DNA from: Octopus bimaculoides
Taxonomy: Eukaryota
NCBI RefSeq assembly: GCF_001194135.2
Contig: NC_068989.1
Coordinates: 59,378,753 to 59,442,752 of the forward strand
Direction of reading: 5' to 3'
DNA: 64,000 nucleotides
Shown: positions 46,501 to 49,500 of the stretch, piece by piece
Layout: each line of letters starts with the position of its first letter
Position numbering within the stretch: position 1 is the stretch's first letter
Program-made: the position numbers and the translations under genes
The notes under the pieces: model-generated
Database searches by the model: none
Seen by the model: only the letters and a program-made list of their open reading frames with translations
Told to the model about the DNA's origin: nothing

Positions 46501-49500
46501 CCTCGTTCCACTTTCTGACCCGAACCAGAGCAATCCCATAATTCCTGCGTTAGCCAGTCGAAATGTCGGAACAACCTGGCGGTAAGTTTGAATTTTTTTT
46601 TTTATCCAAAGCATCTGTTTGCCCTATTATATTTTTGGAGTGTTCTGAAAAAAAAAATAAACGAATATACCATGGAATATATATAATTTATGAAACTTTT
46701 GACAAACTAAAAATCTATTGTAGATAATATAAAACTGATGTTCACACATTTCTGATTATAGATATCAGGAGCGTAAATAAACTGAAATAACTTTTACATA
46801 AAATCGAAACTACAGCTACTAGTTGACTCAATGGAATTCTTTTTTTGCTCTATAACATTCACTGATGATTGATATTTAATAATCCGAAACATATGTCCAT
46901 AGTCGCTCCTTGCTTGCCGACAGAGATAACATCACACTGTTCTTTGTCTTATTATGTGAATTAATGTAAAAAGTTAATTCTTAAATTGTCTCCCTTGGTG
47001 AGACTCGCTAATAATTGTCATTAAGATTCTGTTCTTTTTCTTCAACTAAGAGAGAAAGATTACTGGAGAAATTTTGAAAACGACATTGTGTGTATCATCC
47101 TTTAATACAGTTCATATCGTTCGCACATCGGGTAATATGATTCGTACGTCTTTATGTTCAAATTCCTCGAGGATCGAATTTGCCTCTTATCCTTTCGGAG
47201 TCGCTAAAATAAGTACCACTTGAACAGTGGGATTAATGTAATTGAGTTACTTCCTCCTACTAAACTGATGGCATCGTACCAGCATTTGAAACCAATTTAG
47301 TTGGTATCGTTTTGTATGCATGTATATATGTATATATATATATAAAGTTAGTTGCAGAATAAAACCGTTAGGTCATCGACTCAAAAAAACCGTAGCCCAT
47401 CAATGACCACATATAAGAAGTACAACATAGACCACAAAACCAAATTAGTAAAGGGAAGTCAAAATTTTTATACATAAGAATAAAAATCGATTAAAAATAC
47501 AATAGAATAATATAAATAAATAAATAAACTGCGATTAAAAGTTGATTAAAAATATTAGAGACCGGTACAAATACTGTAGAATAAAAAAAATATATATATA
47601 TATAGAAAAAATATAGAGAAAAAAAATAATACATAGGGAGACGTAGCACAACAGTTCATTCGCTGAGGCCAATAGCCAATAAAAACAGTTCAAGATAAAT
47701 AGTATGAAATAGTAGTAAACAATCTTTTAGAAACGGGACTAGGAACAATGGAAATATAAATAAAAATAGGAATATAGGAATAAATACAAACATATAAATA
47801 AAAATATGGACACTTTAAATAAGCCTACGATACGGGAAAATCCTAATATGGGAATTTTTAAAACAAAAGTTTCGCGACACAGAATAAGAGAAGTAATCTG
47901 GTTCTCCCCCCCCCTTTCCCTCAGGGTAAGAAACTTACCAAAAATGTTCTTTAGGATCTTAGAAAATAATTTTCCTAGGGACCACAAATACTACAATATT
48001 TGTAACAGGTCTACAATTAAGTGTTCCTACTCAGGAATGCCAAATTTAGCATCCATTATTGCCTCTTTAAATAGGAATAAAATAAATAAGTTAAAGCTAT
48101 GGGAATGTCCGCCTCAGGGAAACCCTGTTTCTAATAAAACCAACTGTAAACCACACGACGATAGTGGAACGAGCTCTTCATTCCCTCGGATTAGGCCTAA
48201 ATCTGGGAATGAGGTAAGTGGAATGGCTGATAAGAATAAATTTCTGGGGGCGGTTAATGATGTTGGAAATGACTTTAAGGGTGGCCGTAAAAAATTATGT
48301 AATTGTAGGGACCCTTCTTTATGTCCTCTCGACGGACTTTGTTTGTCCACAAACGTAGTGTATAAATGCGTAGTTAGAGACGAGGACAAACAAAATAAGT
48401 TTTATATTGGAAGTTCAGTGAATTTTAAAGCCAGGTATAGGGCGCACATGAGTTCCTTTTCTAATGAGAAATATTATAATTCCACAACACTCGCCTCTTA
48501 TCTGCATGACCTCAAGAGGAAGAATAAGAAGTACTATCTTGAATGGTCAATCTTAAATAGAACCCCCCAATTTAGGGCTAATATTAGCAAGTGCTTATTA
48601 TGCATTACGGAATTCCTTTCCATTCTTAGGTCTTTTGGGCCGAAAACCTTGAATAAGTTTATCGAGGTAATCCCTTCTGGCAATCATAAATTTTCCTCCA
48701 CCTTCCTAAAACTATATAAAAATAGAAATAAGAACAAAAATAATAGTATTAGTAGTGGTAATAATGGTAGTAATGGTAATGATAGAAATAAAAAGACAAA
48801 AATATTGATATTAAAATATAATAAAAATATGGATACAATGGTAGTATTTACTTTTTATTTATTTTTCATCATGGCTTACGTTGAATTTGAAACCTAATAG
48901 TCTTTAGTTACTAAACCTGCCTGAATATTTTAAAGGGTATACTAAAAATTAGATATTTTTTCTTATCTTTTTTTTTGGTCTAGTCCATATTATTATTTAT
49001 TTAAGCTTGCTCTCATAATTATGATTTCTTTGACTGATGACTTCGTTGATGTCTGTGTGTCTTTTCTTACCCTGAAGAAGGGGTTATCACCAATTTGTGC
49101 TCTATTGTGCCCTAAATACGGTGATATACCCCCGAAATGACCATAGGTGTTCTGTGTTTGTGTTCCACCTATACTTGTAATCCACTGTAAGGGGGGGGGG
49201 GACCAAATTACTTCTCTTATTCTGGGTCGCGAAACTTTTGTTTTAAATATTCCAATATTAGGATTTTCCCGTATCATAGGCTTATTTAAAGTGTCCATAT
49301 TTTTATTTATTATATTTTTGTATACTTGTAATCCACTGTAAATGATGTTTATGGTTTGACGTTACTGATGTTACTTGCGGAATGGTGAAATATGGATTTT
49401 ACTTTGCCACACTTTGGACGTTCTGTTGTTGTTTTGTCCCGTGTACTTCGGTATTCCTGCTTATGAAATTGGATTTTTCCTACTAAATTTGCTGTTGAAC

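Follow-up and report, generated by a model that had tools for sequence, protein, structure and literature searches.

Within the 64-kb stretch of Octopus bimaculoides DNA analysed here (‘the window’, meaning the whole of that stretch; all coordinates are positions within it), an intron of a class I myosin gene contains a type I hammerhead ribozyme motif that almost certainly derives, to judge from its sequence context, from a Penelope-like element (PLE). We propose that a defective PLE of the Hydra clade would have inserted, in the sense orientation, into a (TA)n microsatellite of this intron, and that the motif would be the hammerhead of that element’s 3' region. Our overall interpretation, which we consider likely, is that this transposon relic would be transcribed within the myosin pre-mRNA with little or no cleavage and without a role for the host.

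Read directly from the + strand, the motif presents every element of the type I core in the correct order: C3 U4 G5 A6 N7 G8 A9, followed by G12 A13 A14, the A15.1-U16.1 pair, and a nucleotide other than G at H17. The initial annotation, which had placed a minimal hammerhead at 49068-49149 (+) with cleavage predicted at 49145/49146, is borne out on both counts, the scissile bond agreeing with standard hammerhead numbering. Helix I consists of four base pairs (U.G, A-U, C-G and C-G). Helix II opens with 12 pairs (G49080-C49132 ... C49091-G49120), interrupted by a bulged T49127, and continues into an imperfect distal extension; taken alone, it folds at -20.5 kcal/mol (RNAfold), and 0 of 300 shuffles were equally low. 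In the register that is homologous with L082, a related locus described below, the pair that closes helix II (10.1-11.1) is a mismatch, A49079.C49133, and not a Watson-Crick pair; the initial annotation had this right, and L082 has G-C there. Helix III has three nominal pairs (A-U, U-A and G-C) around an AC loop. Its monomer fold energy is 0.0 kcal/mol, as it is for every ribozyme of the family that we tested; as a duplex between two copies it reaches -2.4 kcal/mol, compared with -8.8 to -15.6 kcal/mol in relatives. The sequence concerned, AUGACCAU, is one base off the palindrome (15.2-16.2 and loop 3) from which a two-copy helix III is built.

Both strands of the window were scanned with a relaxed descriptor of minimal hammerhead ribozymes (min-HHRs), which asks for 4 bp or more in both helix I and helix II (one extra base being allowed in helix II), no more than 90 nt for the helix II region, and 0-10 nt from A15.1 to U16.1. 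The motif is its only match. Across 400 dinucleotide-preserving shuffles of the window, 0.035 matches per window are expected by chance, and none of the shuffled matches had G-C closing helix II. For a match that shares the strand of a PLE endonuclease and falls within the 540 nt that follow it, the expectation is ~1.5e-4.

A hammerhead search had been suggested as a check in the initial annotation, and its outcome was divided: our own descriptor finds the site, whereas the covariance models of Rfam 15 find no hammerhead (Hammerhead_1, Hammerhead_3, Hammerhead_II, HH9 or HH10) in the whole window at the gathering score, nor any hammerhead in 48500-49700 at E ≤ 10. Bearing in mind that Rfam (E ≤ 1) returns no hammerhead over 12 relatives’ loci either, though 11 of them hold one according to R1, a covariance model of our own (34.9-56.2 bits; see below), the Rfam negative for the window says little. 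Genome scans based on Rfam will therefore report too few PLE hammerheads. Matches to SAM-III and RAGATH-34 that arose in the Rfam search of the window were judged to be chance.

Upstream of the motif, on the same strand, lies a stop-free frame of 375 codons (47770-48894) with an ATG at 47806. The open reading frame (ORF) that starts there encodes a linker domain (R.R.I.WF.PP...), a CxCX5C motif (CNCRDPSLC, residues 165-173) and a GIY-YIG endonuclease in which the conserved residues Y186, Y200-I-G202, R210, H214, E269 and N283 are all kept. The Pfam GIY-YIG model matches this ORF below its cut-off (E=0.004). A search with the trimmed ORF found one protein, and relatives were gathered by exhaustive search and with an alignment as query; the exhaustive search gave 5038 relatives at E ≤ 0.001, most of them fragments. 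Their C-terminal module has the consensus R.R.I.WFNPPFS...SYSCMPN...CNCR....CPL.G.C...VVY......YIG.T..FK.RY..H..SF...C.LC..EK...LN.R.EL...CRH, and 35 of the 36 strongly conserved positions of the family (≥85%) are retained in the window’s ORF, C292G being the sole change.

Three relatives of 600-900 residues (P0001, P0037 and P0045) end in the same CxCX5C plus GIY-YIG module and carry, upstream of it, a DKT motif, an RWR motif and a stretch resembling reverse transcriptase (RT), FD..FYPSI ... YRDDG; the RT assignment in these full-length proteins is made from motifs and the literature, and Pfam sees no RT there. Two copies of Pfam also disagree with one another on the family: in a precomputed column, many relatives are assigned PF26215 and PF28514, and our own scans of P0202, P0152 and P0249 were blank. 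Hydra-clade PLEs are distinguished by a DKG-to-DKT change, a CxCX5C linker, the lack of a CCHH motif, and CxxC and CxH motifs that flank the catalytic E and N; they are <3 kb long, insert into (TA)n, universally carry canonical hammerheads, and occur in Cnidaria, Mollusca, Echinodermata and Arthropoda (PMC8557442). As judged from its sequences, the family of the window’s ORF matches these traits, as set out by Craig et al. 2021, exactly. The ORF itself has the C-terminal GIY-YIG domain, the preceding CxCX5C linker and no CCHH, and the insertion lies between (TA)n tracts (Table 1); the relatives L084 and L087 likewise end in (TA)n.

The window’s copy has no RT: in tblastn, P0001 matches only through residues 544-799, at 47872-48717, with nothing upstream. 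Hence we class the copy as a defective derivative and not as an autonomous member of the clade. Homology to the full-length protein starts near P0001 residues ~533-556 not only in the window (47830-48717) but also in several transcribed or assembled copies from the SRR118693xx runs, namely L083 (956-1859), L088 (36-408 and 664-1465) and L092 (345-991); L088 has an internal RT deletion from which residues ~330-555 are gone. An RT-less, endonuclease-only derivative may have been propagated, instead of random 5' truncation.

Another line of evidence for the origin of the motif comes from 80 related metagenome loci, obtained in a scan with six consensus-like endonuclease modules and oriented with the ORF on the + strand. 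The relaxed descriptor finds 21 distinct hammerheads in the related loci. Their helix I varies freely in sequence with pairing kept, their helix II, with G-C or A-U as its closing pair, comprises 3-11 pairs, and their helix III reads ACAG-NN-CUGU, in most cases perfectly palindromic. When these 21 hammerheads are aligned, 86.9% of cells are paired compared with 65.6% upon shuffling, 14 of 20 pairs have changed on both sides, and pairing falls to 30-42% if partners are slid by 1-3 columns, figures that are to be read with the caveat that the descriptor itself required some pairing. The covariance model R1, built from the same 21 hammerheads, matched 81 sites across 88 loci, and 78 of these sites are on the strand of the ORF. 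Of the 56 loci that have 330 nt or more of flank, 49 carry an R1 hammerhead 58-536 nt past the end of the endonuclease match, on the same strand. The window’s motif falls inside that range: it starts 351 nt after protein homology ends (48717) and 171 nt after the stop codon, in the 3' region of a PLE and on its coding strand. Nine loci have two R1 matches that are 2.36-2.85 kb apart, one per unit end; a palindromic helix III, with a ribozyme at either end of the unit, corresponds to the classical double-hammerhead arrangement.

One Logan assembly set (runs SRR11869384-94) is the source of all the closest protein relatives, among which L082 encodes an endonuclease fragment (P0004) that is 62% identical to the window’s. 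At 633-713, 162 nt past its stop codon, L082 has a hammerhead, CATC-CTGATGA-[54 nt]-GAA-ATTACCAT-A-AGTG. The two hammerheads have in common the core, the length of helix II (55 vs 54 nt) and the end ...GAAATTACCATA; their alignment also shares part of the helix II loop (TT.TGCT.TATTG) and ...CCGAAAT.ACCATA.GTG. Among the 13 basal pairs of helix II, two are unchanged, four show double changes, five have a change on one side only, and each of the copies is broken at a single pair. In the double changes (pairs 10.8-10.11; window/L082: A-U/U.G, U-A/G.U, C-G/U-A, A-U/G-C), both sides have changed and pairing is kept, and the five one-sided differences all remain paired as G.U or U.G. Both breaks are A.C, at 10.1-11.1 in the window’s copy and at 10.2-11.2 in L082. 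Most likely, the ancestor had a canonical G10.1-C11.1 pair and the window’s copy carries a G10.1-to-A change. The PLE origin that the initial annotation had proposed for this minimal type I hammerhead is upheld by the Hydra-clade ORF upstream on the same strand, by the similar hammerheads of relatives, and by this homologue.

As to the host gene, the concatenated exons find their best PDB matches in Myo1e, Myo1b and Myo1c. Class I myosin exons flank the motif on the + strand, so the motif does lie, as had been stated, on the sense strand of a myosin intron, which is ~6.4 kb long and holds the PLE. The distance of 2.1 kb to the next exon was also given correctly: that exon (51256-51315), the acceptor of which is preceded by a polypyrimidine stretch, begins 2110 nt after 49146.

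We envisage that, in active members of the clade, the hammerhead would follow the RT-endonuclease ORF, and partial tandems would put one ribozyme at each end of a unit of ~2.36-2.85 kb; the helix III palindrome would form only between two such ribozyme copies. The copy in the window would have lost the RT, keeping the linker and endonuclease ORF nearly intact and a single ribozyme. Inactivity is predicted for this copy because it has that single ribozyme and three features that would weaken it: the A.C at 10.1-11.1, a non-palindromic helix III of 3 bp, and a 4-bp helix I without loop contacts. In published experiments, cleavage by single min-HHRs was not detectable, and that by dimers was weak (PMC4209133). 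The hammerhead of an Anolis PLE (PAc) cleaves only when the element’s protein is present; insertion in vitro does not need the hammerhead, and no Anolis RNA-seq reads ended at the cleavage site of the PLE hammerhead (PMC11167929).

Several observations weigh against parts of this interpretation. In an alternative, slipped register, A49079 is unpaired and G49080 pairs with C49133, which closes helix II with a G10.1-C11.1 pair. R1 gives the window’s motif 5.8 bits (E 0.77, with 935 nt after the ORF stop searched), which is chance level by R1 alone, and an R1 search of the whole window does not return 49068-49149 among its matches; R1 fails on this motif because its helix II is long and its helix III shorter. 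We found only one close homologue of the ribozyme, that in L082, and its long helix II is not the minimum-energy fold, owing to many G.U pairs. No hammerhead follows the ORF in the 3' regions of the close relatives L084, L087, L094 and L098; L083 has a bare CTGAAGA core only, with no homologous motif; and L088 was searched for a CTGANGA core only. Moreover, the window’s copy may be a recent one, since its endonuclease ORF is nearly intact, and cleavage might be helped in trans by PLE proteins that other copies supply. The reported universality of hammerheads in the clade stands against the blank relatives, in which the hammerhead has either been lost in sublineages or diverged beyond the reach of descriptor and model. 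Two further contigs are short on the relevant side: L001 has just 119 nt of 3' flank, and L092 ends 127 nt past a partial gene that stops inside the endonuclease.

Some candidates elsewhere were rejected. The top R1 matches in the window (59653, 53575, 16068...; E 0.13-0.5) are partial, core-only, and not accepted as hammerheads. A pattern scan for the window/L082 type of ribozyme gave 0 matches in viral contigs and a single prokaryotic match in 596 Gb (L093, 1807-1878 (-), on a Flavobacterium aestuarii contig), which has the core boxes without helix II pairing and which we attribute to chance (~0.1 expected).

The alternative that best survives this evidence is an active intronic ribozyme, which would cut a fraction of the nascent myosin pre-mRNA, alone or with PLE proteins, and change its output or splicing. 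We nevertheless consider it improbable. The sense orientation at 2110 nt before the next exon would suit such activity, as would a complete catalytic core, a stable helix II and the available G10.1-C11.1 register; protein assistance to a PLE hammerhead is known (PMC11167929), and the finding of a 2026 preprint that retrozyme hammerheads are depleted from introns implies that such insertions can harm. On the other hand, helix III cannot form in the monomer and is worth just -2.4 kcal/mol in the dimer, a partner copy is absent from the 64 kb, the 4-bp helix I includes a U.G pair and lacks loop-loop contacts, published in vitro work has found single min-HHRs inactive (PMC4209133), and conservation beyond the transposon family is not in evidence. 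Slightly less probable again is that the window and L082 lineage forms a distinct subtype (~55-nt helix II with compensatory pairing), the lone copy of which would cleave with trans-acting PLE proteins and cut a fraction of the myosin-I pre-mRNA; if true, this would be one of the rare instances, in an invertebrate, of a host gene being acted on by a transposon ribozyme.

We place at the same low level a ribozyme that serves the PLE itself, whereby read-through from the myosin promoter would be cut to free a PLE RNA that is competent for transposition or codes for the endonuclease. Such a role was proposed for PLE hammerheads by Cervera and De la Pena (PMC4209133), and the near-intact endonuclease ORF (35/36 conserved positions) is compatible with it; but release of a unit needs two ribozymes where one is present, the copy has no RT, and in the Anolis system hammerhead mutants left PLE insertion in vitro unaffected and RNA-seq ends were absent from the site (PMC11167929). 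With one hammerhead in 64 kb, there is neither a dimer partner nor a second site at which a unit could be released. The suggestion in the initial annotation that self-cleavage affects the myosin or liberates a PLE RNA therefore appears, on sequence grounds, unsupported by what the window holds: a lone hammerhead, a helix III of -2.4 kcal/mol and no RT.

Very improbable, in our judgement, is a retrozyme of the type without long terminal repeats (non-LTR), that is, a small non-autonomous tandem repeat yielding circular RNA: retrozymes do derive from the pseudo-LTRs (pLTRs) of PLEs and do carry type I hammerheads, yet here the ribozyme-bearing segment is single, has no direct repeat in the window, and is linked instead to a PLE ORF. 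Equally remote is a chance match in an AT-rich intron (CUGANGA...GAAA...UH between complementary stretches), for although Rfam is blank, R1 awards 5.8 bits only and relaxed descriptors give many matches genome-wide (PMC4209133), the expectations given above (0.035 per window; ~1.5e-4 downstream of a same-strand PLE endonuclease) and the motif with compensatory changes at the same place in L082 tell against it.

The defective PLE that we favour as the source of the motif is an insertion of 2.56 kb with a complex architecture (Table 1). The inverted repeat that frames it falls into two paired blocks, 47341-47689 with 49827-49507 and 47784-47916 with 49323-49189, at 94-97% ungapped identity. The inner piece, of 130 nt, carries the first 37 codons of the ORF, and its reversed copy at 49191-49320 sits between the two TATACTTGTAATCCACTGTAA repeats; this duplicated piece looks like the product of a template switch or of a secondary insertion during PLE integration. 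Inverted partial copies beside a 5'-truncated main copy, with a one-ended ‘tail’, are typical of PLE insertions (PMC8557442). Two readings of the arms can be given. In the first, which we weakly favour, the 3' region of the + copy is represented by the T-rich + strand of the right arm, and its end recurs, inverted and incomplete, as the left arm. L084, L087 and L098, whose 3' regions are T-rich and terminate in (TA)n, agree with this reading, as do the short 5' leaders of full-length units. In the second, the arms may be the 5' leaders of two head-out copies. Similarity of the L082 3' region to the arms (z ~2.5) is within the shuffle range, and favours the first reading weakly without being decisive. 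No inverted repeats were found in L082, L083 or L088.

Table 1. Positions of the hammerhead motif, the surrounding PLE and the host exons in the window.
Feature	Position	Strand	Basis
Class I myosin exons (approximate limits)	~1239-1517, 14527-14802, 39207-39500, 40957-41070	+	
Upstream flanking myosin exon (approximate limits)	44743-44860	+	
(TA)n tract adjoining left end of insertion	47322-47345		direct reading
Left arm of inverted repeat	47341-47916		repeat search, blastn
ORF, 363 codons: linker, CxCX5C, GIY-YIG endonuclease, low-complexity tail	47806-48897	+	Pfam sub-threshold, homologue search, motifs
AT-rich spacer, stop codon to hammerhead	48898-49067	+	direct reading
Type I hammerhead motif	49068-49149	+	direct reading; sole descriptor match in window; homologue in L082
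Helix I 5' strand TACC (2.4-2.1)	49068-71	+	direct reading
Core CTGAAGA (C3-A9)	49072-78	+	direct reading
Helix II hairpin, 55 nt	49079-49133	+	RNAfold; pairwise comparison with L082
GAA (G12-A14)	49134-36	+	direct reading
Helix III A-TG-AC-CA-T (A15.1...U16.1)	49137-44	+	direct reading
H17 = A49145; predicted scissile bond	49145/49146	+	direct reading
Helix I 3' strand GGTG (1.1-1.4)	49146-49	+	direct reading
21-nt direct repeat TATACTTGTAATCCACTGTAA, 100% identical	49170-49190 and 49321-49341	+	repeat search
Right arm of inverted repeat, T-rich on + strand	49189-49827		repeat search, blastn
Stretch between right arm and (TA)n, may be one-sided ‘tail’	49833-49909		direct reading
(TA)n tract right of insertion	49912-50024		repeat search, direct reading
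Downstream flanking myosin exon, acceptor ...tttcag, donor gtaagt	51256-51315	+	splice signals
Further class I myosin exon	~51728-51874	+	

Other mobile elements have left their traces in the window. Units resembling short interspersed nuclear elements (SINEs) lie just downstream of the PLE (50381-51144; three in tandem, spaced by ~225-313 nt), with more upstream of it (47156-47264 and 45812-45902); they may be akin to the tRNA-derived SINEs of octopus. A 131-codon ORF at 20450-20842 (-) shows a GIY-YIG-like pattern (C..NLVYNIRC...C......HIGEASRS...R..E..RH) and resembles the endonuclease of another PLE type; it has no Pfam match and no descriptor hammerhead nearby. A weak tblastn match (E 9e-5) at 33999-34230 (-), to residues 148-226 in the N-terminal part of P0045, may stem from a second, decayed Hydra-type PLE; the DKT motif of P0045 precedes the matched residues, at about residue 93. 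A non-LTR retrotransposon has left fragments at 25132-26969 (+), with an RVT_1 match at 26574-26969 (E 7.5e-11) and, upstream of it, two ORFs (25132-25578 and 25715-26083, +) that look like its endonuclease and linker parts. At 55541-56475 (+), Tc1/mariner-like transposase remnants run in two overlapping frames, with an HTH_Tnp_Tc3_2 match (E 2.9e-4) and, in the second ORF, a DDE-like stretch (...WQQDSAPCH...). The assembly is a draft, with runs of N at 5647-6232, 15271-15617, 19658-20010, 27342-27465, 45924-45933 and 55027-55054.

The main value of these findings lies in correct annotation: a ribozyme-like motif inside a gene is accounted for as a piece of a decayed retrotransposon. PLE hammerheads, including those of the Hydra clade in molluscs, have already been published; the feature of most note here may be the long helix II shared with L082. 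We expect thousands of scattered single copies per genome, many of them in introns and in either orientation. Were the window’s copy to cleave, it would link transposon ribozymes to the output of a host mRNA, although its sequence features argue against this. Since retrozyme hammerheads are depleted from introns, as the 2026 preprint reports, single weakened copies in the sense orientation are useful test cases for how much ribozyme activity is tolerated by a host gene.

Lastly, we compared the motif with known systems. Like the hammerheads known from introns of protein-coding genes, it is intronic and on the sense strand; theirs, however, have a stable helix III, tertiary contacts, conservation at orthologous sites and efficient cleavage, whereas that in the window is transposon-borne and weakened, with orthologous conservation not in evidence. 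The satellite and retrozyme hammerheads of newts, schistosomes, mussels and other animals (Rfam Hammerhead_1; PMC7229834) are likewise of type I with an unstable helix III, and are active in tandem transcripts; they reside in tandem repeats of 170-400 nt and have loop 1-loop 2 contacts, unlike the single copy here, which has no Rfam match.

Closer parallels are found in the min-HHRs of the Penelope/Poseidon, Neptune and Cercyon PLEs (PMC4209133), which share a short helix I (4-5 bp) and an enlarged helix II. A helix III so minimal as to imply dimeric action, and the many scattered single copies from truncated elements, are further points of likeness to PLE min-HHRs, as is a possible unpaired base between A9 and G10.1; an extra base at this place is typical of them (PMC4209133), whereas in the window the ‘extra base’ is, in the homology register, a mutated 10.1. 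The window’s motif also departs from them in breaking the palindrome rule by one base (AUGACCAU) and in a helix II far above their 6-8 bp.

From its Hydra-clade relatives the motif differs in a helix II of 55 nt as against 10-25 nt in the 21 hammerheads, a helix III of 3 and not 4 pairs with a much weaker dimer, A.C in place of G-C or A-U at 10.1-11.1, the absence from its element of both an RT and a second ribozyme, and the failure of R1 to recognise it (5.8 bits). With the hammerheads described for that clade (PMC8557442), on the other hand, it shares its placement after a CxCX5C plus GIY-YIG ORF, on the strand of that ORF and in an element set in (TA)n; it is likewise of type I with an open helix I, has A at H17, and has a helix III too short to form alone. 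Even the AC centre of its helix III recurs in some of the relatives, L021 and L050 having ACAG-AC-CUGU.

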